A stretch of 64,000 nucleotides of DNA from Macrostomum lignano (GCA_002269645.1 NIVC01000581.1:372001-436000); one strand, 5' to 3'. Shown: positions 10,610 through 64,000, numbered from the stretch's first letter. Translations and numbers: made by a program. The notes: generated from the letters alone by a model not told the origin.

Positions 10610-13600
10610 ATGCTGCGTCAGGTGTCCCAAATTCAGGTGGACTCGCCCAGCAGAGTCCAGCAGGCTGAGATGCAGCTTTGTCTGGGAGACATCACCAAGA
10701 TTGAGCCTGGTGGGGAGCCTTATGATGTCATCATGATCTCGGCCTTCTCTGGTGAGCAAACTTATGGGTTGTGAATTGAGATCAGGCTAGCAGTGTTAAA
10801 GTATAAGGAAGCACAGTAGGGGCAGAGTAGCTCAGCACAGTAGTCAGTAGGGGCAGAGTGGCTCAGCACGCAGAGTGGCTCAGCACGCAGAGTGGCTCAG
10901 CACGCAGAGTGGCTCCGCACGCAGAGTGGCTCAGCACGCAGAGTGGCTCCGCACGCAGAGTGGCTCAGCACGCAGAGTGGCTCAGCACGCAGAGTGGCTC
11001 AGCACGCAGAGTGGCTCCGCACGCAGAGTGGCTCAGCACGCAGAGTGGCTCAGCACGCAGAGTGGCTCAGCACGCAAAGTGGCTCAGCGGTAACGCATCT
11101 GGCTCATCACACCAAAACACCTTGGGCTCGATTTCATGTGTTGCAGGTCTGCTGCCGCCGTGATCTGCGGCAGTGCCCAAGCCTGCTAGCATAGCTACAA
11201 TAGATTAACTCTGCTTGCAAGTGTTGCAATATGTGCCGATTAGTTTGAACTGGTCGAAAAAATCTTTGCATGACAATTTTTTGAGATTGATTTTGAGCTG
11301 TCACGGGGCTGCTCCAGTTTGTTGTTCTACCGTTAATTAAATTCCTATGATCTGAAGCTCACGCGACCCTCGCTTCAGCCGACTACTCAGCAGTCCCGTC
11401 AACCGTTATCGGCGCCCTGAAGCGCCAGTTCAACCTGAGCGTGCGGGACCTGGCCAGGGAAAAGGCCGAGGACTTGCGGAAAAACTTCAACTGCTGGATC
11501 TCCAAGCCGCTGCCTTCTGATCTGCCGTACAAGTAAGGCAGACCTGCGCTTGCGAATAAGAGCACTTTGCGTCAGACTGACTGGCTGTCAGACACTGACT
11601 GGCTTCTGTTACACTGACTGGCTGCTGTCACACTGACTGGCTGCTTTCAGACACTGACCGGCTGCTGTCACACTGACTGGCTGCTGTCACACTGACTGGC
11701 TGCTGTCACACTGACTGGCTGCTTTCAGACACTGACCGGCTGCTGTCACACTGACTGGCTGCTGTCACACTGACTGGCTGCTGTCACACTGACTGACTGG
11801 CTCCCACTCACCACCAACAGGCGGCTGCTCTGCTTCGAGCAGCAGGTGGTGGCCAACAGAGAGCGCAGTCCCGAGAAGGCGGTAGGCGAGATCTTCCGTG
11901 CCATGTTCACGGTGTTCGCCGACAACATGAGCGTCATCAGCCCGCTGCTGGCCACGGGCTGCCAGCGGGCCTCCAAGTCGCGCATCATGCACGCGCTGGT
12001 AACGGCCTGGCACACGTGGATCAGCATCGGCCTGCCCATGCGGCGCTACACTCTGGTCATCTACACCTCCAAGCTGGCCGTGGAGAGCCTCGCCGAGGAC
12101 GACAGGCGGGCCGTCCAAGAGTTCCAGCGGCTCAAGCACGCCTTCGAGAGTCGGCACAGAAAGCCGGACGTGAGCACCGGACGTCAGTGTTTGGGTTGAG
12201 GAGTTCTAGGCAGAGCAAGCTGGAGTGGACTGTGGAACCGTCAGTGTTTGGGTCAAGGAGTTCTAGGCAGAGCAAGCTGGAGTGGACTGTGGAACCGTCA
12301 GTGTTTGGGTCAAGGAGTTCTAGGTAGAGCAAGCTGGAGTGGACTGTGGAACCGTCAGTGTTTGGGTCAAGGAGTTCTAGGCAGAGCAAGCTGGAGTGGA
12401 CTGTGGAACCGTCAGTGTTTGGGTCAAGGAGTTCTAGGTAGAGCAAGCTGGAGTGGACTGTGGAACCGTCAGTGTTTGGGTCAAGGAGTTCTAGGTAGAG
12501 CAGGCTGGAGTGGACTGTGGAACCGTCAGTGTTTGGGTCGAGGAGTTCTAGGCAGAGCAAGCTGGAGTGGACTGGAACCCTTCCTAATTTACATCTGAGA
12601 GAATTTATTTCTTACTATCTTTACCGAAGCTCTAGAACTGCCTTCCCGATCTCCCTAGCCTACAGCCAGCCAGCCAGTCTTATGGTGCATGAAAATGGCC
12701 AGTTTCCACTCCAGATAAAAGATCCAGAAGTCCTTGTCCAATTGCCCCAACCCTCAGCCGGTCCCCATTGAGGCGGACCTGCTAGTGGTCTGCAGCGAGA
12801 AGGACCTGCAGTTCCTGGAGCGGACCACCCGCAGTCTGAAGGCCAACCAGAAAAGCCTGCGCTGCCGCAAGGTGGTGCACAGTGACGACAGCAGCAGCAG
12901 CTCGTCGGGCGATGAGGCTGCTGAAGGCAGCAAAGCGGCGGCTGCGACGTCAGCAATCGACGCCCGGCGCTCCGACATGCTGGGCAGCCGTCTGGTGGTC
13001 TGTCTGCTGTCGCAGGCCTTCCTGGCCACCCGGGCCTGCGTCGAGGATTTCAACGTGGCGATGTGCCTGGCGCACACGCGGTGGCATCCCTTCCTGCCCG
13101 TCTGCCTGGAGCGGCTGGCGAGCCCGCCTACGTACATGTCGCTCATCCAGTGGATTGACTGCCGGCCCAAACCGACAGACCAGCCCGGCTGCGACAAACT
13201 GCAGGCCGCCATCGGGGAGATCGGCGGCAGGCTGGAGCAGCTTGCGTTGGGTAAGTGAAGTGGCCAGGTGGGTGAGTGAAGTGGCCAGGTGGGTGAGTGA
13301 AGTGGCCAGGTGGGTGAGTGAAGCGGCCAGGTGGGTGAGTGAAGCGGCCAGGTGGGTGAGTGAAGCGGCCAGGTGGGTGAGTGAAGCGGCCAGGTGGGTG
13401 AGTGAAGCGGCCAGGTGGGTGAGTGAAGCGGCCCAGTTTGAGTTTGCGTGTTTTAAACCGCATCCAACAGGTGTCTCCAAGCAGGCCGAGCCGGCTCTGG
13501 GACCGGCCGCGGTGGCCGGCGGCGGCAGCGGCTACGACATCTTCATCTCCTACTGCCACCGCAACTCGGCCGCCGTGGAGCCGTTCCTCACCCACCTGCG

Positions 13601-16092
13601 GCTCGCCTGCCCCGCGCTGCGTATCTTCTTTGACAAGCAGGGCATCCAGACGGGCTACTCCTGGATGGAGACCATCTACTCTGCCATTAGCGGCAGCCGT
13701 CTCATCGTCGCCTTCTTGACGCCGGACTACGCCAAGTCGGCCGTCTGTCTGGAGGAGTTCACAATCGCCTCCATGCTGCACCGCTGCGACCGGCACCAAG
13801 CCCTGCTGCTGCCCGTCTGCCTGGAGCGCCTGGGGCCCGCCTGCCCTCCTGCGCTGCAGTCCGTGGCCCGCTGGCTGGACGCCACCGGCTCCAGGGAGCA
13901 GTGCGTCAAGCGGGTGGCCGTCTCCGTTGCTAAGGTGCTGACGGCCAAGTCCGGGGACAAGAAGGCGGCGCATCTCAGAGAACAGCTGTTTCCGGATTGC
14001 CACGTGAGTTTCTGTTTCAGAAAGTTACGCGATCCGTTTCAGAGTGTCACGTGATCTGTTTCAGAGTGTCACGCGATCTGTTTCAGAGTGTCACATGATC
14101 TGTTTCAGATTGTCACGTGATCTGTTTCAGAGTGTCACATGATCTGTTTCAGAGTGTCACGTGATCTGCTTCAGAGTGTTACATGATCTGTTTCAGAGTG
14201 TCACGCGATCTGTTTCAGAGTGTCACATGATCTGTTTCAGATTGTCACGTGATCTGTTTCAGATTGTCACGTGATCTGTTTCAGATTGTCACGTGATCTG
14301 TTTCAGAGTGTCACGTAATCTGTTTCAGAATGTCACGTGATCGTTCTTGGAAGTGTCGCGTCAAAATTACTTGATGCATTGTAAATTTTCTCCGAATTCG
14401 GTCATATGTTTTGAAAACTGTCTCCGAGTGTCGGGCGATGCACCAGTGTCTCCCGCACCCGCCGCCAGGAACTCTCCACCCTGATGTCCCAGACCGACAA
14501 GCTGCGCCAGTCGCTGCTGAATGCAAAACCGCCGCTGCTCAGCTCAGCCAGCCTGGGCGCTTTCGTGAAGGCCGCGGCGGCTGCAGCTGCTGAGAGGCCC
14601 CTGCCAGTTGTGGACATCTGCCACGCGGCCCTGGTCTGCCACCCCGATGAGCGCGAGCCGCTGGTTGAGGCCGTCCGACTTCAAGCCAAGGAATTCGCGA
14701 CCGACCTGCAGGTGCGCTGTCTGGACTCCGAACAGGCGCATGACGATATGGAGGCGATGGAGCAGGTAGGACTGGGAGTGATGCAGCAGGTGAGACTGGG
14801 AGTGATGCAGCAGGTGAGACTGGAAGTGATGCAGCAAGTGAGACAGACTGGGAGTGATAAGGCAGGTGAGACTGGGAGTGATGCAGCAGGTGAGACTGGG
14901 AGTGATGCAGCAAGTGAGACAGACTGGGAGTGATGAGGCAGGTGAGACTGGGAGTGATGCAGCAGGTGAGACTGGGAGTGATGCAGCAAGTGAGACAGAC
15001 TGGGAGTGACGAGGCAGGTGAGACTGGGAGTGATGCAGCAAGTGAGACTGGGAGTGATGCAGCAAGTGAGACAGACTGGGAGTGATGCAGCAAGTGAGAC
15101 AGACTTGGAGTGATGCAGCAGGTGAGACTGGGAGTGATGCAGCAGGTGAGACTGGGAGTGATGCAGCAGGTGAGACTGGGAGTGATGCAGCAGGTGAGAC
15201 TGAGATTAATGAAGCAGGTGAGGTGGCAGGTGAGCCTGCAAGCCTTCAACCCTCTCACTCGATCAGGCCAGCGTGGTGGCGCTGTTTCTGTCGCCGGTGT
15301 TCCTGACGTCCGCCCGGCTCACCAGCCTGTTGTACCTGGCGCTGTGCCGTAGGCGGAGCCGGTCGGCCCCGGTGCTGCTGTTCTGCCTGAACCCGCTGCC
15401 GCGGCACCCGGCATTCTTGAGCCTGCTGCCCGTGAATGCCAGCATGGAGGATGTCAAGGTGAGTCGCGGGCTGCCTGCGGCGGGGCTGCCAGGCCTTCAG
15501 CGCTATTAGCAATTCCCGAATCCCCTCAGACGCTGGCCTTCATGTACAACGGCCAGCAGAAGGAGCTGTCCGCCTGTCTCGGGCCGGCCTCGCGCCAGCA
15601 GTTCTACAAGCTCACCCACGCCGAGTCCGTCTTTGCTGTCTGCTGCGCCCGGGCCATCGTTGAGCGGCTGCTTGGGTAAGGCATGAGTTCTCATGTCAGT
15701 CTCACACAGTTCTCATGTCAGTCTCACGCAGTTCTCATGTCAGTCTCACGCAGTTCTCATGTCAGTCTCACACAGTTCTCATGTCAGTCTCACGCAGTTC
15801 TCATGTCAGTCTCACACAGTTCTCATGTCAGTCTCACACAGTTCTCATGTCAGTCTCACACAGTTCTCGCCCTAAATCGCGCCCCATCGCCTGCAGGCTG
15901 CCGGAGAGCCTGGTCACCACTCCCGCGGTGCTGGTCTCGCTGTCAGAGCTCGCTGCTGGTGCCTACCTGCGGGATCCAAACGAACCAAAGCCTTGGAAGC
16001 AGGTGAGAGTGGCTGAGTAACTGGCAGGGACAGACTGAGTGCAGGATTATTGCTTAATCCATTCCGCATTGCAGGTCATGGAGCCAATTTAA
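10610..16092 (+). CDS. Macro-like domain + three TIR-type domain protein (809 aa, 10 exons)
   Basis: Exons 10610-10751, 11379-11532, 11821-12169, 12758-13250, 13471-14003, 14469-14765, 15267-15458, 15530-15675, 15897-16002, 16075-16092; all GT/AG with an open frame across 2430 nt. Macro-fold motifs LCLGDITKI..YDVIMISA, VIGAL and SVISPLLATG. Canonical TIR YDIFISYCH..RIFFD..GYSWMETIYSAI..SRLIVAFLTPDYAKSAVCLEEF in exon 5, a related TIR in exon 4 and a degenerate one in exons 6-7. Confidence 0.88.
10855..11090. repeat. 17-bp minisatellite, Macro-TIR intron 1
   Basis: GCAGAGTGGCTCAGCAC, about 13 copies. Confidence 0.95.
11570..11800. repeat. 19/20-bp minisatellite, Macro-TIR intron 2
   Basis: CACTGACTGGCTGCTGTCA units. 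Confidence 0.95.
12180..12575. repeat. 57-bp minisatellite, Macro-TIR intron 3
   Basis: CCGTCAGTGTTTGGGTCAAGGAGTTCTAGGCAGAGCAAGCTGGAGTGGACTGTGGAA, about 7 copies. Confidence 0.95.
13251..13430. repeat. 21-bp minisatellite, Macro-TIR intron 4
   Basis: GTGAGTGAAGCGGCCAGGTGG units; the first unit is the intron's first 21 nt. Confidence 0.95.
14004..14345. repeat. 22-bp minisatellite, Macro-TIR intron 5
   Basis: GTGATCTGTTTCAGAGTGTCAC units. Confidence 0.95.
14766..15205. repeat. 24-bp (with 29-bp variant) minisatellite, Macro-TIR intron 6
   Basis: GTGAGACTGGGAGTGATGCAGCAG units starting at the donor. Confidence 0.95.
15685..15868. repeat. 22-bp minisatellite, Macro-TIR intron 8
   Basis: GTTCTCATGTCAGTCTCACACA units. 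Confidence 0.95.
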
Positions 16093-16619
16093 GCTGCCGC
16101 AGCTCTTTCAATCAGCAACAGTTTTTGCTTGATTTGACTGCCGCCGAAAGTAGTGCAAGAGCTTTTTACTAGCTTCATTAAAACAGAAATCCGTAATTTT
16201 TGGCGTTTTTACATGGTACTATCAATATTACTGTAAGTAGCTTTAATGCGATGCTATTATAATCTATTTTCAAATAGCCGTTTTGCGCCATTTGTGTGTG
16301 CAGAGCGGCAAAATTTATCTCAGTTTATGGTTTTTATATTCTATATTTTTGCACTAAAATTTATTGGCTGTGATTATTATTTAAGTATCTTATTACACTG
16401 ATGTATTAGATTATAATAACTATACAGTAAGCAAAGACAGCTTTGGCTTCCCTGAGCGAATAGGAGTGCACCCCTGGCATTCCTGCAGATTGCTATTGCA
16501 GTAAATACATGGGTTGTCAAGTGCTTCTGTTGCACTGCGCCACGCTCTTATCAAACTTTAAGTTTGAATTTTATCTCTTTCGTGTGCTCAGTTCTTTGAT
16601 ATTCCAGCTTAGCGTTCGT

Positions 16620-17103
16620 GTGAATGAACCAGGGATCTAACTGGTGACGTGAATGAACCAATGGTCTAACTGGTGACGGTGAATGAACCAGTGATTTAAC
16701 TGGTGACGGTGAATGAACCAGTGATCTAACTGGTGACGGTGAATGAACCAGTGATTTAACTGGTGACGGTGAATGAACCAGTGATTTAACTGGTGACGGT
16801 GAATGAACCAGTGATTTAACTGGTGACGGTGAATGAACCAGTGATTTAACTGGTGACGGTGAATGAACCAGTGATTTAACTGGTGACGGTGAATGAACCA
16901 GTGATTTAACTGGTAACGGTGAATGAACCAGTGATCTAACTGGTGACGTGAATGAACCAGTGATCTAACTGGTGACGTGAATGAACCAGTGATCTAACTA
17001 GTGATGTGAATGAACCAGTGATCTAACTGGTGACGTGAATGAACCAGTGATCTAACTGGTGATGTGAATGAACCAGTGATCTAACTGGTGACGTGAATGA
17101 ACC
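16620..17103. repeat. 29/30-bp minisatellite
   Basis: GTGAATGAACCAGTGATTTAACTGGTGACG units. Confidence 0.95.
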
Positions 17104-17719
17104 TATACATCTCCCAATCCCAGTCTCCGAATCATATTCTCCAAGTTGCCGAAAACCGTCGTTCTCTCCGTGGACTTGTAACTGTATCTAAAATGGCTGA
17201 TTCTTCAATAGCGAGTGACTTGGACTGCAGTGCCGAGCTGCATTGAGTGGGTGAGTCTGAGTGCATCCAAGCCAACTTTATTGACACAGCTCCATGCCCA
17301 GAGCTTTATTCTCTCAAGCAGCCGCAAGCGTCCTGTGGAAAGCAGCAGCTCCCTCCAGGTCTTTCCCAGCCGCGCCAGGCACTGGGGCAAACACTGGCAC
17401 CGGTGTCTGCGACTTGCAGGCGGTGAGGATCCACTTTGAAATTCAAACCACTCAGGAAAGGAAGCCAAGCAGAAAACTGGGGCAAATATCCTATGTATGA
17501 TTTTTTTAAAATTGGCTGTCTGAGATGCTCCGGAATAATAGAAATTTCACACAACGGTTTCATATCTCTTGCAAAGCTCTTCAGACAATAGAAATAAAAA
17601 AAGCATGTGCCAAGACCATATTAAACAGAATTTTGTTTGCCTCAAATATCGGGATGTATCCCTAGCAAATTGTGATTGTCGGAGTGTTTATTCTTGGGGA
17701 AGTGTAGTTGTCCGAGTGT

Positions 17720-18315
17720 TTATACCTCCGTGGAAGTGTAATTGTTCGAGTGTTTACCTCCGTGCAAGTGTAAATTGTCCTTGGAAGTGTGATTGCCCGA
17801 ACCTTTACCCCCGGGGAAGTGTGATTGCCGGAGTGTTTATCCCCGGGAAGTGTGAGTGCCGGAGTGTTTATCCCCGGGAAGTGTGATTGCCGGAGCGTTT
17901 ATCCCCGGGAAGTGTGAGTGCTGGAGTGTTTATTATCCACGGGGAAGTGTGAGTGCCGGAGTGTTTATCCCCGGGAAGTGTGAGTGCTGGAGTGTTTATC
18001 CCCGGGAAGTTTGATTGCCGGAGTGTTTATCCCCTGGAAGTGTGAGTGCCGGAGTGTTTATCCCCGGGAAGTGTGAGTGCTGGAGTGTTTATCCACGGGG
18101 AAGTGTGAGTGCCGGAGTGTTTATCCCCGGGAAGTGTGAGTGCTGGAGTGTTTATCCCCGGGAAGTGTGAGTGAATGGAGTGTTTATCCCCGGGAAATGT
18201 GAGTGCCGGAGTGTTTATCTCCGGGGAAGTGTGAGTGCTGGAGTGTTTATCCACGGGAAAGTGTGAGTGCCGGAGTGTTTATCCCCGGGAAGTGTGAGTG
18301 CCGGAGTGTTTATCC
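17720..18315. repeat. ~31-bp minisatellite
   Basis: GGAGTGTTTATCCCCGGGAAGTGTGAGTGCC units, increasingly degenerate toward the left edge. Confidence 0.95.
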
Positions 18316-18419
18316 TCTGCTGAATCCACTGTGCATCTCCTGCGCATGGTGTCTGCATGGCTCCTCGTGACTGTCTCCCGTTATGTTTGATAACAGACTA
18401 CGATTTATGATGTCCATGT

Positions 18420-18735
18420 ATTAATATAATGATAATAATTGACTACACCTGACCCAAAGTGCAGAAATGCAACCGACCACTCAGCCGCAGCTATTGCGCA
18501 GAGCATCAGAAGGCTGCGTACGGCTGTTCAATCCAATGACTGGCGGGGGGGAGTCACCACACACCCTCAGTTACCCCAGCTAATGCTGGCACCCATTTTA
18601 CAGCTGGGTGAACTGAAGCAATGCAGGGTTAAGTGTCTTTCTCAAGAACATGAATTGTTCCGAATAAGTCGAGAATCGAACCCCCGACCTTTCAATCGCG
18701 AGTCCGACGCTCTAACCACTAGGCTAGAGCAGTAA
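18420..18735 (-). mobile_element. tRNA-derived CORE-type SINE
   Basis: On the minus strand: A-box TAGCCTAGTGG (18726-18716), B-box GGTTCGATTC (18682-18673), then TTCTTGAGAAAGACACTTAACCCTGCATTGCTTCAGTTCACCCAGCTGTAAAATGGG resembling the MIR/CORE domain, ending in an ATT-rich tail near 18420. Confidence 0.75.
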
Positions 18736-18743
18736 AGCTGCAG

Positions 18744-20017
18744 CAGTAAAGTGCATCACGCAAAAGTGCACATGCAGACAGTCTCTTGCTAGAAGTCAGT
18801 AGCGCGTGGACGCCCCGCGTACTTGAAGCAGGGCAGCAACTCGACGTGGCATGCTGAGCCTGTTGATGCGGTCCTGTGGCAGCTGCTGCCAAACTTCCAT
18901 CACTGCCAGCCGCATCCGCAGGAGGATTCTGCTGCTGCTGGGTGCGTCGCTTGATAACGTCCGAGGCGTACTCGACTGGGTTCATGTCCGGCGACCTTAA
19001 AGGCCAACGCAGCATTCGGATTCCCAGCTGCTCTTCCAGTAGATGCACAGCGACTGCTCGATGCGGCGGAGCGTTGTCATCTTGAAGGATGCAGCTCTGG
19101 GAGAAGCTCCTGTCCAGACTCCCGCCACACACGCACTCGGGAGAAGCTCCTGTCCAGACTCCCGCCACACACGCACTCGGGGAGAAGCTCCTGTCCAGAC
19201 TCCCGCCACACACGCACTCGGGGAGAAGCTCCTGTCCAGACTCCCGCCACACACGCACTCGGGGAGAAGCTCCTTTCCAGACTCCCGCTACACACGCACT
19301 CGGGAGAAGTTCCTGTCCAGACTCCCGCCACACACGAACTCGGCCGTCGCTGTGGAAAAGACGAAAGCGACCCTCGTCGCTGAAAACCACTCGCCTTCAC
19401 TGCGCAGGTGACAGTCGCAGCCGCTTCCTCATCTTCCGGGAACGCCAACGCTGTCTCTCAGATTCTGCGCTGGACTGTCTGGCACTGGGCAGCTAGCGTG
19501 ATGAACTCTCGCGCCATAGCAGGCGCAGCATCGTGGCTGGCTGGCAATGTCCGGTTCGCGCGGACAAGCCAAAGAAGTCGTCAGCTCTCGCAGTTGTCTG
19601 CCTTCGCAGTCGGCCAGAGTTGCCATGGGCAACCGAGCTGGTGCGTTGCCACTTGGCCAGCAGCTGCCGGATGGATCGTCTTCAGCGCGCGGCCTGCAAG
19701 AAGTGCGTGCCATGCAGCTCCAGCCATTCCGACAGCTCGCAGCTTTTCAGCGGTGGTCGTCATGTGCCTCACCAGTATAATCGCAATCACTGACTGCCAC
19801 ACTGACAGCCACATTCCTGCGTTTTTACTGCCGCCTGCTAGAGGTGAGAGGTGGCTGTTACGCAACTCTGCTGAGCCGCGGCATCCAGCAAGCCGCGCCA
19901 GGGGGGTGGGGTTTAGATGCTGCTGAGTGCAGTTTCTCGTGCATCAACTGCACCTTTTTAATGATTGCCTTTGAAACAAGGATCCGCAGAGAGCGTCGCT
20001 GCGAGCACTTCACTGTA
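18744..20017 (-). mobile_element. Decayed Tc1/mariner (DD34E-type) transposon
   Basis: Minus-strand fragments EKLRAVGM, TVQRRI*ETAL (DNA-binding region), VFSDEGRF, ILQDDNAPPH and WPLRSPDMNPVE give the D, D, E catalytic motifs with frameshifts. Possible degenerate CAGT(A/G)AAGTGC termini at 18744 and 20015; the ends are uncertain. Confidence 0.8.
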
Positions 20018-20956
20018 TCACTGTCTTAAAATGTACTAATAAATCATCACACTGTATCATCAATGAATCCGTATATAGTATGCACCCTGTAGTAAATTTA
20101 TAAGGCTTCAGACTCGTTCAGCACCATCAAATAAGGCTAAATTTCGTGTGATCACACAACTTGTACATCAGTAGTCTAGCGCGGCACTCGCGGCACTAGC
20201 GCGGCACTCGCGGCACTAGCGCGGCACTCACTGCCAGCGGTCCCAGGCTCGATTCCAAGTGGTCATATTAATTTGGGACTAAATTTGAATCTCAGCTTGG
20301 GTCTGCTCGTGCAATTAACGCCAACCCCCAAGGCGAAGTGGAATGTACATGCCGATGAATAAAGTTGAGGCCGCTGTACACTCCAGTATGCCGATGCGCA
20401 TGACTGCCTGCTAAGGGGAGTCGGCAGAATGGGCAGAAATTTCTCTCTTGACGGTTGTGACAGTGTCGCTTAAAGGTGCTCCAGGGTGCATACAGCCTCC
20501 TGCCTCTAAAAGAATCCAACCATGCTTCTGAGGACTTGTCTGCTCTCATATAGAGCTCCAAGAAGGTTATATATTTAGCTGCTTATTGCTACTCGTAGAA
20601 AAGCCTGCTCAAGATATCGAATCATTTTTTGCTACTGTCTCTGGTGTTGAGTCTGAAGTTTATCAAATGAAAGAGACGATCAACATGAATGAGATTGGTT
20701 TTCTTTTTTGAATTGCCGATGTTTTTCGTCCAACAAAAGGACACAGTTTTACATGTAAATAACAATATCCGAAATCTAAAGTTTTCTAGGAATATTGAAT
20801 TCTGCTTGGTTCTTGCAACACATACTGTCTCGAATGTACGAGCGCTTGTGAAAAGTTTCAAGCCATGGATTTCAAGGCTGTCAAAGACAATCAAACTCTT
20901 TCCGCAAAGATAAAAACACATGCTTCCTTATCCAACGAAAGTCCTTTCTCAAAATA

Positions 20957-22972
20957 TCAAACCCGCTGTTGCTCTGAGCTCATTTCATCGAGTTTTCCTT
21001 CATCTAAATGAGCAGAGCTGCCATTTTGCATTTTAGGCATCGCGTGTACTGCGTTTGCATTCGAGCGCCTCTTCAGCACTTTGATCAGGTTGTACAGCAG
21101 CTCGACGAGCTCGCACAGGCTCAGCAGGCTGCAGCCGAGGTAGATGCCCGCAGTGCCGCCCATGTCGGCGATGAACGTCTGCAGAGAGTAGCCGGGCGAC
21201 AGCCGGATCTGCGAGCTGCGCGACTCCTGGCTGCGCAGCGTCACTTTCAGGCCCGAACGGGAGAAGAACTTTTCAGCCAATTGTTCCAAATGCGAAAGAC
21301 TGAAATAATAGATGGATATGAGCCGATAAATAGCTGACCAAGCGGGCCTCGAAACGTTCGGCTCCTGTTCCAAGATTGTCTTCATCACGTCGGTGATGAC
21401 CCGGATCTGCCCGTTCTCGTTGGGCCAGTTCGCGCTGGAGGTGCTGGTCTCGTACTTCCGTGACACGCACAGCTGCCTGCTCTGGCACAGCTGCTGGAAG
21501 TCGCTCAGCGCGGCCGTGTCAGCTGTGAACGCCTGCAGGAGGTTCGACTCGATCTGAGACTCGTTCAGGCCGCTCGCATTCAGGCAGAAGCGCAGGTGCC
21601 TGAACTGCCACGGCAGCGGGTTCACGTACGGACTGCAGCCGCCGTTCACAGACAGCTGCCGAGCGAACTCTGAGAAGTAGCAGAAGCTGTTGCTGTAGCC
21701 GAACGCGTACGCCGAGCCGTCGTACGGATTGACGAACTGCACGTCGGGAGCCTCCGTCAGGCAGCGTCCGCCGTACGCCTCGGGCTCCTTCTTGATGCTC
21801 TGCATGCTGAGCCCGATGCTGTAGGACCTGCCGGGAGCGAGCAGGAAGTTGGTCACGAACCTGCTCGGGTACTCGCCTCGAGGAGCCAGGTACAGCCTCA
21901 TTCCCATCGGCCTGTCGATCTCGTAGGGCGAGTCCAGGTCCCAGTCGTACACGAATGTACTCAGGTTGTTGTACAGCGGGACCGTCACGCTCATTACCTG
22001 TGAATACGCGCTGACATTCAATACGCTATAAAAGTCGGTGAAGTACGGATCCAGAATGAACTGGAAGCTGATCTCCGAGTTGACCTTGCTCAGCTCAGCG
22101 AGTCTCTGCTCGGTCAGCTCGACCTTGAGACACTTGAGGTGATTCGAGTGATAGAAGGGTCTGAGGGAGACGCCCGACTTGCTGTCGTTCTTCAGTACCG
22201 TCTGCTGCTCCTTGTGAGCGAGATGGTCCACCAGCAAGCTGTACGGCATTGACTGGATGGCGGACTTCAGTCTGTACAGCTTCATCTGCTCGATTTGAGA
22301 CTCGGTGGCGTTCGCGAGCGACGAGTTGAGCAGCCGTTGCAGCGCCGAGTCGAAGGTGGCGAGCGAGGCGGTCACCCTGGCGTTGATGTCGGTGACGAAC
22401 TCGCTGGCGAGCGTGACGGAGTAGGTGCCCGACACCTGGACATTGTTGCAGAAGTACACGTCGGGAAACTGGAAGTCCACAGCCTCGGCCTCGTAGGAAG
22501 TGCTGACCTCGCCTCTGACGAGCTTGCTTGTGAAGCCGTGCATGCTGAAGGTGAACACAGCGAGCAGGGCCAGGAAGGCCAGCAGCCAGCAGAGCTTGAT
22601 GTAGAGCGGCCTCTGGCCCGCCAGCCTGCTGAGCCCGTGGGCTGTGGTCTCGCTGGCAGCCGCGGCCAGGACCTGCGTCAGCAGTGCTCCAGTGCTCTTA
22701 CTCTCTTCTGAAGCTGGCGTGGCGTGGACTTTGTTCTAAAAATAGTTCATTTGTATTTGTGCGGCTTTTTACATAACGCCTTACAATATTCTGCCTATTA
22801 CTGTTTCAGGTTCGTTCGGGGACTTTGAAGTGAGGCAACACATCCGCCTGAGGTTATACGAACTACATGTGAGTGCGAAATGTCCTTTACAGCGTTTTTG
22901 AGAGCGCCTCAGCTAATGCTGATTTTTTCTTAATTCTCGGAAGGCCCACAAACAGGAACTCACATCTTCCAT
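20957..22972 (-). CDS. DEG/ENaC (amiloride-sensitive channel) family subunit, ~595 aa
   Basis: Main exon 22735-20957 (acceptor TTTTAG), plus a probable 9-nt first coding exon MED at 22972-22964 with a GTGAGT donor. Motifs: ETTAHG, TM1 KLCWLLAFLALLAVF, FPDVYFCN, Cys-containing thumb, and TM2 ADMGGTAGIYLGCSLLSLCELVEL with the GxS filter. Confidence 0.92.
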
Positions 22973-24476
22973 GTGCGACCACTTGATGGAGAGCAGTAGT
23001 GAAGAGTTAAACTGTTCTTGAGACAAATAACACGAGACTGAGCCATGCAGTCCGATGCTTTTGCTCGCCTTTATCTACCTCCGGCCCGAGCGGCTTTGAT
23101 GCGGGCTGGTTGCCATAGAGATGCATTGCCTGCTGCGCGCTGCTGCGCGCTGCTGCTATGAAGAACGGCATTGGCCTGAAGGCAGGCTTCTTTTCCAGCA
23201 TAGAATTGTCCTCAAGTCAGCAAAGCACTTCATTCAGTATCTTATTGAGCAAACATAGCTGCCACATCTCTCTGTGCCTTCAGTGCAGAAGGTAAACTCT
23301 CTGGAAAAAAAGCGCTTGCTGCAAGTAGCTCGTAAAGTACGCGCGCTTTTGTCGATAATTTTTTTCAACTTTGAATTGGAAATTGGGACCGGTATTGAGT
23401 ATCCTGAGTCATTAAATTACTACCGGTGGGAACTGGACTATCATTGAGACCTTGAGGGCTAAGGCGATTGAATTCGTGATCTGCTGAAGCAGCAGAACGA
23501 CACCGGGAGCGGAGTGCTTCCAGGCAGTTTTTTCACAATTCTTTTTAGCCTTTTTGCACGCAGTGGGGCTTGTGGACGAGTTCACCTTGTTAGTTACCAT
23601 TTTTTACTTCAGGGTACACCACTTTCCGAGCAATGCGTGCAGCCTTCATCACATTTTAACTCTGCAAGGTAACTCGAGGCACTGGCTGGTCGTAGACACG
23701 TCACAGACTCATGGCAGCTGAGCGAACAGCTAAAAGAGTCCAGGCACCGTTGCTATGGCAACAGTACACAATCATAGTCAGTATAAACTCATTTCGTCAT
23801 TAAAGAAGTCTTCGATTCAGCAGGGTTGCTAAGAAGCTTTGGAAGCGGTACCTGCTGCTGGGCTGTTGTTACTGCAGACTGCAAAGCTGAGCACACATTT
23901 GTGAGCCCAACTGCATGGGTGAGCACGTAAACAAATGTGAGATGGGTGAGGAGGAATTACAAAAGTTGATAACCAGAGATTCCTACAGGCATGACAGTTG
24001 CTCTTGCTCACAGCACTAAAGTTTGGGCGGTACTTCATTAAACACAAGCCTTTATTCCCAAGGTTAGTAATTGTAAATTTGTGTGCTTCCATGCAGCTGA
24101 GGTGACACACAAGTAATGGCGCACCGCGCCCTCGCACCGCGTATTTAAATTATTGTTTTCTATAGAGAAGGCAGGCGGCAACTCTGGTTTTCGGAAGAAT
24201 AGCTGAGCATAGAGAGCCGCTGAGTGCTCTGTGACGGCAGCAGCTGCGGGTGCAGCGCAGGGCGTCAACCCAGCATATTGTACAGCTCTGTGCTGCTGCT
24301 CAGATGTGCTCTAAAGTTTATAACTGGGCAGAGAATGTCGGGGGGGGGGCAGAAGGGTCTGACACTGACTGCTGGCTGCCCGCTCTCATTCCCATTGCCC
24401 GGTCTTAAAGCATAGCGCAGTGCGACAGAAGCTTTCAAATACAGCAACTCAGGGGAAGAGCAAGCCAGCCGCAAGC

Positions 24477-26509
24477 ATGCCGTCAACTTCCTGGAGATGT
24501 CACCGTCGTTGGCGTCGCCTTCGTGACGACGTAGAAGAGGCCGGCTTCGCCGAGACAGAAGGCCTCCTTTCTGGCAGCTTCAGTGCAGCGCAGGACGCGA
24601 ACGCCGATGATGCATCGGCCGACTGCCCAGCTGAGGGCGAAGTTGCAGCTGCGGAGCCGCTGGTTCAGGAGGAAGCGACGGACGTGGCGACCGCGACTTT
24701 CAGGACTGGCAAGGGACGGTCGGCTCGAAAGCTGGCCAGGACTGCTAAGAGAAAGGTGCGAAATTTCATCCCCAGTTATATCCCCCCCTAGCTGGACTCC
24801 GATCCAACCCAACTGCTGGACTAAATCCAACCCAGCTGGACCCGATCCAACCCACCTGGACCCGATCCAACCCAGCTGGATTCCGATCCAACCCAGCTGG
24901 ACTAAATCCAACCCAGCTGGACTAAATCCAACCCAGCTGGACCCAATCCAACCCAGCTGGACCCAATCCAACCCAGCTGGACCCGATCCAACAAAGCTGG
25001 ACCCGATCCAACCCAGCTGGACCCGATCCAACCCAGCTGGATTCCGATCCAACCCAGCTGGACTAAATCCAACCCAGCTGGACCCAATCCAACCCAACTG
25101 GACTAAATCCAACCCAGCTGAACTAAATCCAACCCAGCTGGACTAAATCCAACCCAGCTGGACCCAATCCAACCCAGCTGGACCCAATCCAACCCAGCTG
25201 GACTAAATCCAACCCAGCTGGACTAAATCCAACCCAGCTGGACTAAATCCAACCCAGCTGGACTAAATCCAACCCAGCTGGACTAAATCCAACCCAGCTG
25301 GACCCAATCCAACCCAGCTGGACTCAATCCAACCCAGCTGGACCCGATCCAACCCACCTGGACCCGATCCAACCCAGCTGGATTCCGATCCAACCCAGCT
25401 GGACTAAATCCAACCCAGCTGGACTAAATCCAACCCAGCTGGACCCAATCCAACCCAGCTGGACCCAATCCAACCCAGCTGGACCCGATCCAACCCAGCT
25501 GGACCCGATCCAACCCAGCTGGACCCGATCCAACCCAGCTGGATTCCGATCCAACCCAGCTGGACTAAATCCAACCCAGCTGGACCCAATCCAACCCAGC
25601 TGGACCCAATCCAACCCAGCTGGACTCCGATCCAACCCAGCTGGACTCTGATCCAACCCAGCTGGACCAAATCAAACCCAGCTGGACCCAATCCAACCCA
25701 GCTGGACCCAATCCAACCCAGCTGGACTCCGATCCAACCCAGCTGGACTCCGATCCAACCCAGCTGGACTCCGATCCAACCCAGCTGGACCAAATCAAAC
25801 CCAGCTGTACCCAATCAAACCCAGCTGGACCCAATCCAACCCAGCTGGACTCAATCCAACCCAGCTGGACCCGATCCAACCCACCTGGACCCGATCCAAC
25901 CCAGCTGGATTCCGATCCAACCCAGCTGGACTAAATCCAACCCAGCTGGACCCAATCCAACCCAGCTGGACCCAATCCAACCCAGCTGGACTCCGATCCA
26001 ACCCAGCTGGACTCTGATCCAACCCAGCTGGACCAAATCAAACCCAGCTGGACCCAATCCAACCCAGCTGGACCCAATCCAACCCAGCTGGACTCCGATC
26101 CAACCCAGCTGGACTCCGATCCAACCCAGCTGGACTCCGATCCAACCCAGCTGGACCAAATCAAACCCAGCTGTACCCAATCAAACCCAGCTGGACCCAA
26201 TCCAACCCAGCTGGACCCAATCCAACCCAGCTGGACCCCGATCCAAAATACGAGCTAGGTCATAAATGCGCATATGCATCGAAGTATTGCAATATTTCAA
26301 AACTTTCAAATTTTTTTTATAAAATAAAACTATCATCAAGCACAAACCCACCCCTGCACCGGCAGCTCTCCCGGCTGTTCCGCAGGCTGTGGCGCGGTGT
26401 ACGGAAGTCTGCGACCTCAGCGGGCGCACTGAGCTCCGGCCAGGACTGGCTGCTGGGCATGGAGTGGCTCGCTACGCTGCCAGCAGCGGGCCTGAAGGCG
26501 TCCGGCTGA
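24477..26509 (+). CDS. Orphan two-exon protein (~140 aa; acidic N-half, basic amphipathic helix)
   Basis: Exons 24477-24755 (AAG|GTGCG) and 26366-26509 (CAG|CTC) join in frame as KLARTAKRK-LSRLFRRLWRGVRKS. Both are GC-rich and flank a minisatellite like the other introns here. The start codon is uncertain. Confidence 0.5.
24790..26240. repeat. 20-bp minisatellite (TGGACCCAATCCAACCCAGC)
   Basis: About 70 copies with variants, inside the intron of the orphan gene. Confidence 0.95.
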
Positions 26510-26809: not shown

Positions 26810-27970
26810 GCGGGGATGTGGGGGATGTGAGTGGCTGTGGGGGATGTGAGGGGGCTGTGGGGGATGTGAGTGGCTGTGGGGGATGTGAGGGGCTGTGGGG
26901 GATGTGAGGGGGCTGTGGGGGATGTGAGGGGCTGTGGGGGATGTGAGGGGCTGTGGGGGATGTGAGGGGGCTGTGGGGGATGTGAGGGGGCTGTGGGGGA
27001 TGTGAGTGGCTGTGGGGGATGTGAGGGGCTGTGGGGGATGTGAGGGGCTGTGGGGGATGTGAGGGGGCTGTGGGGGATGTGAGGGGGCTGTGGGGGATGT
27101 GAGGGGCTGTGGGGGATGTGAGGGGCTGTGGGGGATGTGAGGGGCTGTGGGGGATGTGAGGGGCTGTGGGGGATGTGAGGGGGCTGTGGGGGATGTGAGG
27201 GGGCTGTGGGGGATGTGAGGGGCTGTGGGGGATGTGAGGGGCTGTGGGGGATGTGAGGGCTGTGGGGGATGTGAGGGGCTGTGGGGGATGTGAGGGGCTG
27301 TGGGGGATGTGAGGGGGCTGTGGGGAATGTGAGGGGGCTGTGGGGGATGTGAGGGGGCTGTGGGGGATGTGAGGGGGCTGAGGGGGATGTGAGGGGCTGT
27401 GGGGGATGCGAGGGGCTGTGGGGGATGTGAGGGGCTGAGGGGGATGTGAGGGGGCTGTGGGGGATGTGAGGGGCTGAGGGGGATGTGAGGGGCTGTGGGG
27501 GATGTGAGGGGGCTGTGGGGATGTGAGGGGGCTGTGGGGGATGTGAGGGGCTGTGGGGATGTGACGGGGCTGAGTGGGATGTGAGGGGCTGTGGGGGATG
27601 TGAGGGGCTGTGGGGGATGTGAGGGGGCTGAGGGGATGTGAGGGGCTGTGGGGGATGTGAGGGGCTGTGGGGGATGTGAGGGGCTGTGGGGGATGTGAGG
27701 GGCTGTGGGGATGTGAGGGGCTGTGGGGGATGTAGGGGATGTGAGGGGGCTGTGGGGGATGTAGGGGATGTGAGGGGGCTGTGGGGGATGTGAGGGGGAT
27801 GTGAGGGGCTGTGGGGGATGTGAGGGGGCTGTGGGGGATGTGAGGGGCTGTGGGGGATGTGAGGGGGCTGTGGGGGATGTGAGGGGGCTGAGGGGAATGT
27901 GAGGGGCTGTGGGGGATGTGAGGGGCTGTGGGGGATGTGAGGGGCTGTGGGGGATGTGAGGGGCTGTGGA
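26810..27970. repeat. G-rich ~19-21-bp minisatellite (GGGGGATGTGAGGGGCTGT)
   Basis: Visible directly; the 470-aa and 426-aa P/H/S/T ORFs are read-throughs of it. Confidence 0.95.
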
Positions 27971-38927: not shown

Positions 38928-40086
38928 TCAGGCCCGGCTCCAAAGCTCGCCCTGCAGCGTGGCCAGAGACGCGGGCACAGCGGCAAACCGTAGCAGATGG
39001 CAGCGGCTTCCAGTGGTGAAGAAGGCGGCCTGGCAACCGCTGGCTGCGGCCTGGCACTCCACCAGGCAGTCAAAGAGGCTCCTCCCCGAGCCCAGACTGC
39101 CGGTTGTCACGGAGTAGCCCGGGCTCACCGTCACCTGCAGCACTGAGCCACCAGCGATCCGTTTAAACACGTTGCCGTCTGAAAATTTGAGGGTTGAATC
39201 GCGCGAATACGAGCTAGTTATGGGGTACACGCCACTGGGAGGGAATTTAAGTTGCCCATGGCATTCCAGCCACAATCCAAGGATTTAGTTATCAAAAGCA
39301 GTAAGCATGTATGTAGTGCTTTTCCCCGATCAGAGCAGCAGAGCTGGAACGCTTGCTTTGGGTCTGAAATATTCCTGGATATTTTATGTGCTCATTTTTG
39401 CAGCAGAGAGATCTTGCATACGGAGAAAAGCAGCTTGAAGCAGCCTTTGTCCAAGAAAGACCGGTTTTCTGAGGTCAACTTCAGCAGCATCAACCTCAGT
39501 TTTAAATCCGCAGACAGCTTGGGTTTTAATTGAACTCTATTGACGACTATGAACTCTATGGACTCAGAGTTCTTCTATAATGCTATTGATAAGTGTCTCT
39601 GAGATCTACAGTGAGCTCACTCAACCAACCCCAGTAGACTAAAATTTCAGGTCTAAGCAACTGCTCACCAAGGTATCGGATCTCGAACATAGAGTTCCTG
39701 GAGTAGCCTCCGCACTTTTGTGTAGCATTTCCAACGCAGCTATAAGAGCAGCTGGACTCCGTAGCCGGGCCGTAGGATCCGTAGGTGAAGTCGCAAGAGC
39801 ACACTCGGCTGTATTGCACGCCAAAGTAGGTGAAGCCGCCCAGAGCGCAGATCCGGCCGCACAGCTCGTGCGTCATGCTCGAATTCCACGCCAGGCCCTC
39901 TATGGCGCTCGCGATTGGGTGCGGGCCCAGCTTCGCCAGGCCCTTCATGCCGCCCAGGTCGCGACCGCTTGGCGCGCCCTCCACGTAGCAGCCGAGGTAG
40001 CGGAAGGTCAGCTGCCGAGCCGCCTCAGCCAGCGAAGCCTGGGGGATCAGCAGCTGCAACGCAAGAGCAGCGAGCTGCACAAGCAT
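38928..40086 (-). CDS. Secreted WSC + PAN/apple-like protein, paralog B (222 aa, 2 exons)
   Basis: Exons 40086-39669 and 39178-38928 (TTTTCAG acceptor, phase 1). Signal peptide MLVQLAALALQLLIPQASLA, WSC YLGCY..MTHELCGRIC..YFGVQYSRVCSC..CSYSCVGNATQKCGG, and C-terminal CLVEC..GCQAAFF..CHL. Exon 2 is 251 nt, identical in length to paralog A. Confidence 0.88.
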
Positions 40087-40499
40087 CTTGTGGCTGAGGC
40101 CCGAGAGTCGGAGGACTGGCTGCTGGCTGAAGCGTCTGGGTCGGAAAATTAAGTCAGCGGCTGGCCGCAGCAGGTTTCGGCATTCATTGGTCGGGTCGCT
40201 GCCAACCAATGACACATAGATGGCGCATTGACACCGCAGCTTGCAGTTCGCTGTGCCCTGCATTGTATGCTCACGAAACTTACAGGAAATTCGGGGAATC
40301 ACCTGATGCCTACTGCCAAGCAGCTCCCAATAGACTTTATAGACTTTAAATCCCGTGTTTGCGGGCCTCAGTTCGGGTTGTGTTTGATGAGCAATTTTAC
40401 ATGCTCATCATGGTATCTCCCTTAGCCCTTTTTGTTCTTGAGATGAGTTGTTCAGGTCAGATCGCTAAGATTCCTGCTAACCGAATCCTCGCTCCCCCG

Positions 40500-63200: not shown

Positions 63201-64000
63201 TTCTCAGGGAGGATCAGGAGTGATTCTCAGGGAGGATCAGGAGTGATTCTCAGGGAGGATCAGGAGTGATTCTCAGGGAGGATCAGGAGTGATTCTCAGG
63301 GAGGATCAGGAGTGATTCTCAGGGAGGATCAGGAGTGATTCTCAGGGAGGATCAGGAGTGATTCTCAGGGAGGATCAGGAGTGATTCTCAGGGAGGATCA
63401 GGAGTGATTGTCAGGGAGGATCAGGAGTGATTCTCAGGGAGGATCAGGAGTGATTCTCAGGGAGGATCAGGAGTGATTCTCAGGGAGGATCAGGAGTGAT
63501 TCTCAGGGAGGATCAGGAGTGATTCTCAGGGAGGATCAGGAGTGATTCTCAGGGAGGATCAGGAGTGATTCTCAGGGAGGATCAGGAGTGATTCTCAGGG
63601 AGGATCAGGAGTGATTGTCAGGGAGGATCAGGAGTGATTCTCAGGGAGGATCAGGAGTGATTCTCAGGGAGGATCAGGAGTGATTGTCAGGGAGGATCAG
63701 GAGTGATTCTCAGGGAGGATCAGGAGTGATTCTCAGGGAGGATCAGGAGTGATTCTCAGGGAGGATCAGGAGTGATTGTCAGGGAGGATCAGGAGTGATT
63801 CTCAGGGAGGATCAGGAGTGATTCTCAGGGAGGATCAGGAGTGATTCTCAGGGAGGATCAGGAGTGATTCTCAGGGAGGATCAGGAGTGATTGTCAGGGA
63901 GGATCAGGAGTGATTCTCAGGGAGGATCAGGAGTGATTGTCAGGGAGGATCAGGAGTGATTCTCAGGGAGGATCAGGAGTGATTCTCAGGGAGGATCAGG
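48201..64000. repeat. 23-bp satellite array (CAGGGAGGATCAGGAGTGATTCT), at least 15.8 kb, runs off the window
   Basis: Continuous array of roughly 650-690 units. Main variants are GATTCTC and GATTGTC, plus a 9-bp insertion (TAGGGAGGA). Confidence 0.99.

Follow-up and report, generated by a model that had tools for sequence, protein, structure and literature searches.

The locus described here lies in a 64,000-nucleotide stretch of DNA (the window, within which all positions are counted from its first letter) from Macrostomum lignano, a transgenic flatworm tractable to RNA interference (GCA_002269645.1, NIVC01000581.1:372001-436000). Its plus strand carries, at 10610-16092, an intact gene for a soluble cytosolic protein that combines a Macro-fold domain with three TIR domains. 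An earlier note on this DNA, made from the sequence alone, had claimed one spliced gene of ten exons and 809 amino acids (aa), and this model was rebuilt exactly, with canonical AG and GT borders throughout and a joined coding sequence of 2430 nt that specifies 809 aa and a stop. The gene is not a chance open frame, because orthologues match it at E 1e-51 to 1e-84 (27-34% identity, query coverage 42-88%); full-length orthologues reach 83-88% coverage (~86%) at E 1e-60 to 1e-84.

In the layout adopted here, the Macro-like domain spans aa 1-215, TIR1 ~216-370, TIR2 ~398-540, and TIR3 ~600-760. Exon 1 (10610..10751, aa 1-47) runs from the ATG start codon to a GT donor and encodes the first Macro-like strands, with G26-D27-I28-T29 at 10685-10696 and the beginning of a SAF motif that stands in place of NAAN. 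The domain continues in exon 2 (11379..11532, aa 48-98) with Y50, the first helix, D79-L-R81, and C86-W87-x-S89 (W87 codon at 11495-11497), and is completed in exon 3 (11821..12169, aa 99-215), which holds C103-F104-E105 (E105 codon at 11837-11839), the loop-2 motif I138-S-P140-L-L-A-T-G145-C-Q147, and W165/G169. TIR1, which is degenerate in M. lignano, is encoded by exon 4 (12758..13250, aa 216-379), and a Gly/Ala linker and TIR2 by exon 5 (13471..14003, aa 380-557), with a YDIFISY strand and the motif S469..C472-L-E474-E475-F (E475 codon at 13755-13757). A helical linker and the beginning of TIR3 lie in exon 6 (14469..14765, aa 558-656), the TIR3 core in exon 7 (15267..15458, aa 657-720), and its end in exon 8 (15530..15675, aa 721-768). 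Exon 9 (15897..16002, aa 769-804) encodes a C-terminal tail of low model confidence, and exon 10 (16075..16092, aa 805-809 and the stop), identical in the UniProt-derived models P0001 and P0002, brings the protein to its end at ...KPWKQVMEPI.

The best database match (E = 0) is UniProt A0A1I8H2J0 (P0001), a "TIR domain-containing protein" of M. lignano to which the exons are 100% identical; tblastn gave 100% identity across whole exons, for example 5 and 9, and P0001 is therefore this very locus, which bears out the earlier note in taking the gene for an animal one. It differs from the 809-aa model solely by 39 aa skipped at the exon 2/3 junction, which in the spliced model reads ...CCGTACAA followed directly by GCGGCTG.... 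The UniProt model removes RDLAREK...CFEQQV via an internal donor and acceptor in the interval 11440-11860. Those 39 residues are retained in the paralogue P0002 and in all orthologues, and they contain the family-invariant D79, L80, C86, W87, C103, F104, and E105. Because P0002 retains the segment and the segment holds invariant positions, the 809-aa model is the better one, and the deletion in A0A1I8H2J0 is probably an annotation error. A full-length AlphaFold2 (AF2) model was built on P0001, that is, on this locus minus 39 aa; in P0001 numbering, which is the window numbering minus 39, strand/helix alternation starts at residue 571, and the predicted local distance difference test score (pLDDT) is below 50 over the last 35 residues (736-770), the C-terminal tail. 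Near-identical M. lignano copies, P0002 and P0003, are known as protein models in databases; compared with this locus, some of these models have internal deletions or stretches in which the frame is disrupted. A candidate open reading frame (ORF) running through intron 4 at 12882-14054 was rejected as a GC-rich by-product in the wrong frame for exon 4.

Pfam matches to the full protein at E ≤ 1 were limited to TIR_2/TIR, plus a sub-threshold Glyco_transf_4 match (E 0.21), with no leucine-rich repeat (LRR), death, SAM, or ARM domain. No transmembrane (TM) segment was found, the top 19-residue hydropathy (1.63, residues 659-677) falling on a TIR core strand. Pfam and hydropathy thus agree with what had been claimed about absent domains, and the hallmarks of SARM1 (ARM plus SAM), MyD88 (death domain), and TLRs (LRR plus TM) are all missing by the same measures, in keeping with the view that this is no Toll, MyD88, or SARM1 architecture.

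The Macro-like domain

The N-terminal domain is modelled as a divergent Macro fold, a result on which independent lines agree. An alignment of 17 orthologous N-termini (profile A2) was searched against PDB and also served as input for AF2, which gave residues 1-215 a pLDDT of 91.4 and a predicted template-modelling score (pTM) of 0.89. Foldseek returned 115 PDB matches to this model at E ≤ 1e-3, and the top 50 were all macro domains or macro-carrier fusions (the "SPX" entries) at probability 1.00, with template-modelling scores of 0.53-0.68 when query-normalised and up to 0.78 when target-normalised. The best were Af1521, macroH2A, YmdB, and the macro domains of PARP9/14/15; viral macro domains matched too. 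All seven matches of the profile search were likewise macro domains, if weak ones, headed by PARP14 macro 3 (E 0.076) and followed by PARP15, alphavirus nsP3, and Af1521, and hhalign against E. coli YmdB gave E 1.5e-4. The Macro-fold N-terminus proposed in the earlier note therefore stands on the structure prediction and fold search by which it had suggested checking it. No Pfam Macro-clan model matched, at E ≤ 1 on the full protein or at E ≤ 0.01 in 10 prokaryotic homologues. Hurieva et al. (bioRxiv 10.64898/2026.04.20.719644) arrived independently at the same assignment: their Table S2 labels residues 18-184 of A0A1I8IEA3, a paralogue from M. lignano, "MACRO" at an HHsearch probability of at least 80%, and likewise relatives from Lingula, Mizuhopecten, and Strongylocentrotus.

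The motifs of the Macro ligand site, namely the adenine-contacting Asp of GD(I/V)T and the phosphate-binding loop 2, are present. GDIT occupies residues 26-29, its extension GDITKL being identical to GDITKL of YmdB, and loop 2, PLLATGCQ (residues 138-147 region), aligns with FPAISTGVYG of YmdB. The NAAN/GGG region is replaced by ISAFSADYSAVPST, in which NAAN has become (V/I)SAF, with Phe46 for the last Asn, and GGGVD has become xxGTVI, with Ile for the Asp; the same substitutions occur in all orthologues. The residues that a MacroD-type hydrolase needs (the NAAN Asn, the GGG of the Gly-rich loop 1, and the Asp after it) are thereby lost, and the alignment with YmdB agrees with the earlier description of a GDIT and P..TG loop kept beside a replaced NAAN/GGG loop.

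Conservation was counted over 187 sequences, from animals and prokaryotes, that contain the Macro-like domain in full. W87 and E105 are 100% conserved, D27, D39, S44, Y50, D79, R81, C86, and S89 at least 93%, G26, C103, G145, W165, and G169 at least 91%, and P140 at least 87%. The window protein keeps all 29 invariant family columns, and G26, D27, T29, and S44 are invariant across 18 sequences. We propose that the domain binds an ADP-ribose-type or NAD-derived ligand and performs no classical ADP-ribose hydrolysis, because the GDIT Asp and loop 2 are kept, the MacroD Asn/Asp and Gly-rich loop 1 are lost, and the family has an invariant pocket of its own (D39, S44, Y50, D79, R81, W87, S89, E105). 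The label "non-hydrolytic" given in the earlier note is right in that the MacroD-type residues are gone, but it is unsafe in view of invariant polar residues including Glu105 and Trp87, and sequence alone cannot separate binder from enzyme.

TIR domains and relatives of the protein

Three TIR-type domains had been proposed and three are found, of unequal strength in this copy. TIR2 is the strongest: the whole-protein TIR_2 match (E 2.4e-29, 102.8 bits, cut-off 28) has its best stretch at 403-524, and the whole-protein Pfam TIR match scores 48.5 bits (cut-off 21.3). Its PDB sequence matches are Cat1 (the best, 3.4e-5), TLR15/TLR2, and Roq1, and the bacterial-type PADLOC models PDC-S66, SAVED-TIR, and ThsB match it as well. 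The TIR1 segment alone is marginal at 28.2 bits against the TIR_2 cut-off of 28, a partial match over profile positions 47-117; all 13 orthologues match TIR_2 in this domain, and the best PDB match of their profile is the MyD88 TIR (1.7e-8). A Ser-rich low-complexity insert (aa ~256-285) here replaces the orthologues' conserved VWQ..IY stretch, and the C-terminal PTYMSLIQWIDCR motif common to bacterial homologues is kept. The TIR3 segment alone fails the threshold in the window protein (16.4 bits, E 0.013), whereas 11 of 11 orthologues match TIR_2 there at E ≤ 0.1 (best 3e-9), and it has Leu at the catalytic-Glu site (SARLTSLLYLAL) where orthologues have S..H.EELHIAL. In the full-length P0001 model the three appear as flavodoxin-like units, with fold matches to plant, MAL, MyD88, Hydra, and AbTir TIRs.

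A census of the catalytic Glu, in which the TIRs of the 187-protein set were aligned to one hidden Markov model and a single column was scored, separates these domains further. Prokaryotic single TIRs (n=114) have Glu in at least 92 cases, 10 others being gapped at the column (at least 81%, or ~90% of those aligned). Among 45 animal proteins, TIR1 has Gln in 24 and Glu in 12, TIR2 has Glu in 44, and TIR3 has Glu in 27 and Ile in 10; the corresponding residues of the window protein are Asp313 (CVEDF), Glu475, and Leu. TIR2 is thus the sole catalytically plausible TIR of the window protein, and the messenger-making TIR of the earlier note would fit TIR2 but not TIR1 or TIR3. TIR2 and TIR3 seem to have arisen by internal duplication of the Macro-adjacent TIR.

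The window gene is the flatworm representative of an orthologous family that spans Spiralia and Ambulacraria. Forty-five proteins have the Macro-like domain and three TIRs, colinear with the family-invariant residues. Besides the flatworm, orthologues come from bivalves, gastropods, the brachiopod Lingula, the nemertean Tubulanus, crinoids, sea stars, brittle stars, sea urchins, and the hemichordates Saccoglossus, Ptychodera, and Glandiceps; the matches examined included none from vertebrates, arthropods, or nematodes. In databases the orthologues go by "uncharacterized protein" or "TIR domain-containing protein", or have been assigned "ADP-ribosyl cyclase/cyclic ADP-ribose hydrolase" automatically. 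The contigs of one cluster, 2.4-2.9 kb long, each code for a whole protein of 774-780 aa and, to judge by their length, resemble assembled transcripts, so that the Macro and TIR parts probably share one mRNA in relatives. The haptophyte Pavlovales sp. CCMP2436 also codes for a 637-aa protein (P0044) with a Macro-like domain at 16-191 and weak TIR matches downstream, and the family thus occurs in at least one non-animal eukaryote.

In animals, the C-terminus of about 20 of the 31 full-length orthologues is a polybasic stretch with a CaaX motif, mostly CxxL (e.g. SKSCQIL, SSTCNIL). This ending predicts geranylgeranylation, and with it a membrane-tethered cytosolic protein in most orthologues. 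The window protein has neither and ends in QVMEPI; by this comparison the flatworm protein appears to have lost the prenylation signal. An alternative 3′ exon encoding a CaaX ending was sought by scanning all plus-strand frames of 15897-24000 and rejected, as the scan gave short non-basic AT-rich fragments only.

The family extends well beyond animals. Searched exhaustively with HMMER, the Macro-like profile gave 1264 cluster representatives at E ≤ 1e-3 (227 at E ≤ 1e-30), and the Macro-like-TIR pair occurs in many bacterial and some archaeal phyla, which overturns the earlier view of an animal-specific fusion. Below the animal proteins in the hit list stand hundreds of ~340-aa proteins, and in all 10 prokaryotic proteins scanned a TIR_2 domain directly follows the Macro-like part, over which Pfam is blank. 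A genome scan with a profile from 8 sequences, restricted to one genome per species, located 76 loci in named prokaryotic genomes, the bacterial ones in Cyanobacteria, Planctomycetes, Chloroflexota, Actinomycetes, Myxococcales, Bacteroidota, Acidobacteria, Gemmatimonadales, and Proteobacteria; three of the 76 are archaeal (Methanocrinis, a Methanotrichaceae metagenome-assembled genome, and a Lokiarchaeon). Examples are the proteins of Ca. Uabimicrobium amorphum (NZ_AP019860.1, L010), Nostoc sp. CHAB 5824 (L003), and Ca. Methanocrinis natronophilus (L008), and the only database name for the type is "TIR domain-containing protein".

A TIR stands immediately after the full Macro-like domain in 167 of the 187 proteins (single in 114, double in 8, triple in 45); 20 have none, 18 of them being no longer than 260 aa. 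Residues 21-351 of the window protein (Macro-like plus TIR1) are colinear with the Ca. Uabimicrobium amorphum protein over its full length (32% identity, E 6e-44), an alignment that takes in the C-terminal PTYM..Q.IDCR motif; for TIR2 against that bacterial TIR, identity is 33% (E 1e-23). The window protein and its prokaryotic counterparts have in common the motifs GD, SAF, DY, DLR, CW.S, CFE, P..G.Q, and W..GLP, together with LP.YM..QY.DCR at the TIR C-terminus. They differ in that the prokaryotic version has one TIR, usually with the catalytic Glu, whereas animals have three, of which the Macro-adjacent one is usually Glu-less. The Macro-like domain and TIR form an old two-domain unit and no animal invention.

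All-against-all clustering of 815 neighbouring ORFs revealed no conserved partner gene outside Chitinophagaceae, and on that ground the unit behaves as a stand-alone gene; ten adjacent genes checked in other phyla proved to have unrelated housekeeping roles. Of the unit, PADLOC and NCBIfam pick up the TIR part alone, through PDC-S66, SAVED-TIR, ThsB-like, and retron-TIR models.

At the Chitinophagaceae loci (L029-L045, L059-L063, L074) the gene sits in a conserved co-oriented cluster with a patatin-like phospholipase, one or two ~460-aa DUF4071-like proteins, a protein with TIR and TM parts, and an outer-membrane-barrel-like protein, as read from sequence with no family search; the cluster looks like a multi-TIR defence island. 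Both Ca. Uabimicrobium genomes carry two tandem Macro-like-TIR genes (L010 6001-8421; L014 5947-8428), one of which has the top score to the animal-derived profile among named prokaryotes. In the metagenomic proteins P0080, P0111, P0113, and P0049, some units stand behind a type VI secretion system sheath (VipA+VipB), Hsp70, or a Ser/Thr kinase plus FHA, the sheath-Macro-like-TIR fusion being an odd architecture.

Introns, repeats, and neighbouring features

Seven of the nine introns (1-6 and 8; 10752-15896) are 38-91% minisatellite, with units of 17-57 bp. The array of intron 4 (13248-13433) has a 21-bp unit containing GGTGAGTGAAG, that of intron 6 (14756-15222) a 24-bp unit, GATGCAGCAGGTGAGACTGGGAGT, and both begin at the exon/intron junction, so that the 5′ splice-site sequence is repeated many times in units whose lengths are divisible by three. 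If used as alternative donors, the repeated GGTGAG units of these two arrays could add in-frame repeats to the protein.

Elsewhere in the window, a satellite with a 23-bp unit, AGGGAGGATCAGGAGTGATTCTC, fills 48202-64000, the last 15.8 kb, with a GC skew of ~+0.55, and further long arrays occupy 24790-26238 (20 bp x 71) and 26812-27969 (19 bp x 60). Three features on the minus strand are unrelated to the TIR gene: a DDE_3 transposase fragment (18719-19390), a single-exon ORF of 533 aa from the amiloride-sensitive sodium channel (ASC/DEG-ENaC) family (20957-22558), and an ORF with a WSC domain (39583-40302).

Known systems and possible modes of action

The most likely working mode of the window protein, at a probability of roughly 45%, is that of a self-contained nucleotide-gated TIR enzyme. 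The Macro-like domain would bind its ADP-ribose-type or NAD-derived ligand, and binding would control TIR assembly and NAD+ cleavage by the same logic as in TIR-STING, TIR-SAVED, and CARF-TIR (Cat1). TIR2 would be the NAD+-cleaving unit, with a product of the cyclic ADP-ribose (cADPR) or ADP-ribose (ADPR) type, and TIR1 (Asp here; Gln in most animals, as in MyD88) and TIR3 (Leu) would be non-catalytic partners that provide TIR-TIR interfaces. TIR active sites form between neighbouring TIRs, as in AbTir, SARM1, and plant TIRs, so that TIR2 could have built-in partners in TIR1 and TIR3, which are without the Glu. Most orthologues would be held at membranes by C-terminal prenylation, the flatworm signal having been lost. 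Nucleotide gating is the best supported reading because the two domains form an obligate pair in fixed order, stand alone in prokaryotes, keep the adenine and phosphate contacts alongside distal-site invariants of their own, and retain a Glu-bearing TIR.

TIR-STING, TIR-SAVED (Cap12), and CARF-TIR (Cat1) resemble the protein in joining a nucleotide-binding domain and a TIR in one chain, and Cat1 and the SAVED-TIR model are, as given above, among the matches of TIR2 itself. TIR-STING is common to bacteria and invertebrates such as oysters. The present family differs from all three in that its sensor fold is Macro and, in animals, its TIRs are three in tandem. In SARM1 (ARM-SAM-SAM-TIR), a cytosolic TIR enzyme of animals, the N-terminal domain binds nicotinamide mononucleotide/NAD+ and so gates the TIR; the window protein has no ARM or SAM and a different regulatory fold, and its family is not orthologous to SARM1. 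The non-hydrolytic reader macro domains (macroH2A1.1, PARP14 macro 2/3, PARP9 macro 2) are, with Af1521 and YmdB, the closest solved folds, and like them the Macro-like domain is devoid of MacroD catalytic residues. Identity is 11-20% to the listed fold matches and ~14-18% to the reader domains, and, unlike the latter, the Macro-like domain has the invariant Trp87, Glu105, and DLR and is never joined to PARP or histone domains.

Several points weigh against a nucleotide-gated TIR enzyme. From sequence we infer both ligand binding and NAD+ cleavage by family members, and the ligand could be other than an ADPR derivative, because the Macro models of Pfam gave no match at E ≤ 1. The fully conserved Glu105 and the other polar invariants suit an enzyme as well as a binder. 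The full-length model (pLDDT 68, pTM 0.51) is only moderately confident and gives no reading of how the domains communicate, and the window copy, with its low-complexity insert in TIR1, degenerate TIR3, and missing CaaX, may be reduced or altered in function. Catalysis by the TIR is plausible but not assured: 12 of 61 tested Glu-bearing animal TIRs made a cyclic ADPR isomer in E. coli, mostly canonical cADPR, yet the TLR2 TIR has the Glu and is inactive, so that Glu alone is no predictor (bioRxiv 10.64898/2026.04.20.719644). The TIR clusters of this family (A0A1S3JVX5_1/_2/_3) carry a "no" in the last column of Table S3 of that preprint, taken here to mean untested.

The main rival, an unlikely one, makes the Macro-like domain itself the enzyme. 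Using a non-MacroD site at Glu105 with D79, R81, S44, and Y50, it would act on what the TIR makes, for example by opening a cADPR/ADPR derivative or trimming it, and so create or destroy a signal, or it would remove ADP-ribose from protein or nucleic acid. Two residues conserved at 100% (E105, W87) and seven polar positions at 93% or more are more than a simple binder needs, and other macro classes do employ non-MacroD catalytic residues, TARG1 using Lys/Asp and PARG Glu-Glu. A NUDIX gene lies directly downstream at one prokaryotic locus (L019), and the macro domains of TIR anti-phage systems have been predicted to regulate them by acting on cADPR (PMC9503650). The replacement of the MacroD-type Asn, Asp, and Gly-rich loop 1 argues the other way, and a product-destroying enzyme fused to the product-maker in a stand-alone gene would be futile unless regulated. 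Two further readings, an adaptor role and decay of this copy, are less likely still and rank below the others. It is improbable that the protein is a non-enzymatic adaptor or scaffold that makes TIR-TIR contacts in a Toll/MyD88-like pathway and docks through its Macro-like domain on ADP-ribosylated proteins or another partner. The MyD88 match of the TIR1 profile, Gln at the catalytic site as in MyD88, fold matches that include the MAL and MyD88 filament TIRs, and the CaaX anchor of most orthologues, such as a receptor-proximal adaptor might have, all favour it, as does the proposal that conserved cytosolic invertebrate TIR proteins (ecTIR-DC) act as adaptors or regulators (PMC6321704). It accords poorly, however, with the Glu kept in TIR2 of 44 of 45 animals and in at least 81% of prokaryotic single TIRs, with the occurrence of the unit in prokaryotes, which are without a Toll pathway, and with the resemblance of TIR2 to bacterial enzyme-type models. 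Least probable of all is that this flatworm copy is a decaying paralogue of little or no function; the Ser-rich insert and half-length Pfam match of TIR1, a sub-threshold and Glu-less TIR3, the absent CaaX, and the several near-identical M. lignano copies (P0002, P0003), some of whose models have internal deletions or frame disruptions, would fit, but ten exons are open, the splice sites are all canonical, and every family-invariant residue is kept in the Macro-like domain and TIR2.

Somewhat less likely than Macro-like catalysis, and more so than the adaptor role, is a single-chain circuit on the lines of Thoeris, in which TIR2 makes an ADPR-type messenger that the Macro domain of the same or neighbouring copies senses, with feed-forward oligomerisation or feedback inhibition as the outcome. 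A catalytically plausible TIR and a Macro fold do share one chain, and no separate signal producer lies near the prokaryotic homologues, so that the protein's own TIR is a possible source of ligand. Within one polypeptide, however, a diffusible messenger is unnecessary, and the best-studied sensor-TIR fusions, those with STING, SAVED, and CARF sensors, receive their ligand from a separate enzyme; a make-and-sense circuit in cis would be a special case with no specific support, and is speculation. Type II Thoeris resembles the present protein in pairing a TIR with a Macro-fold domain, the macro domain of ThsA binding ADPR, imidazole adenine dinucleotide (IAD), or His-ADPR made by the TIR and oligomerising (PMC11204291; bioRxiv 10.1101/2024.01.03.573942). 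There, however, two proteins are involved and the Macro domain of ThsA, the effector, sits on TM helices, whereas here the Macro-like domain shares a chain with the TIR and TM segments are absent. In PADLOC, neither the ThsA models nor any others matched the Macro-like region, whether in the window protein, in two orthologues from animals, or in 10 homologues from prokaryotes, ThsA was not among the PDB profile matches, which were PARP14/15, Af1521, and nsP3 only, and loop 1 is very unlike that of canonical ADPR-binding macro domains. With no ThsA-type match, no TM segment, a single fused gene, and no conserved partner, the protein does not belong to type II Thoeris, and no specific link to ThsA was found for the Thoeris-like reading of the earlier note.

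Whether the family was already annotated in other invertebrates, which had been left open, is answered by the databases, where the gene and its orthologues are found, and by the MACRO plus TIR tag in the supplement of one 2026 preprint, whose main text makes no mention of macro domains (bioRxiv 10.64898/2026.04.20.719644). Elsewhere Macro and TIR appear as separate components of conflict systems, with no description of the fused pair (PMC7159879, PMC8195603, PMC9503650). No account of the fused family, its invariant residues, its distribution from bacteria and archaea to invertebrates, or experiments on it was found in the literature searched. The animal proteins may fall under one of the ecTIR-DC families into which Gerdol et al. 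2017 (Dev Comp Immunol 70:145) reportedly sorted the cytosolic TIR proteins of invertebrates.

The architecture is solid, and conservation from bacteria to animals is a real lead, of which the flatworm copy is a partly degenerate representative. Beyond the nucleotide-gated mode proposed for the window protein, a broader and more doubtful suggestion, offered tentatively, is that the Macro-like-TIR unit is an ancient stand-alone immune sensor-effector of bacteria, archaea, and invertebrates, as TIR-STING is. An unnamed Macro subfamily with invariant Trp87 and Glu105 would recognise an infection-derived molecule of the ADP-ribose type, such as the product of a viral ADP-ribosyltransferase or of NAD+ breakdown, and would switch on NAD+ cleavage or cADPR signalling by the adjacent TIR; in animals the unit would have grown to three TIRs and gained a prenyl anchor to membranes.

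Sensor-TIR fusions such as TIR-STING, TIR-SAVED, and CARF-TIR are central to bacterial immunity, and TIR-STING is a textbook case of an immune module that invertebrates have too. Macro-TIR would be a further module of this kind, conserved colinearly at 32% identity between prokaryotes and spiralian/ambulacrarian animals and possessing an invariant pocket of its own. As small single genes, the bacterial homologues lend themselves to phage-defence and NADase assays, and the question is timely, as the first data on cADPR-making animal TIRs outside the TLRs have just appeared (bioRxiv 10.64898/2026.04.20.719644). If an ADPR-type ligand is bound, the family would be a direct link in animals between the sensing of ADP-ribose and TIR enzymology.

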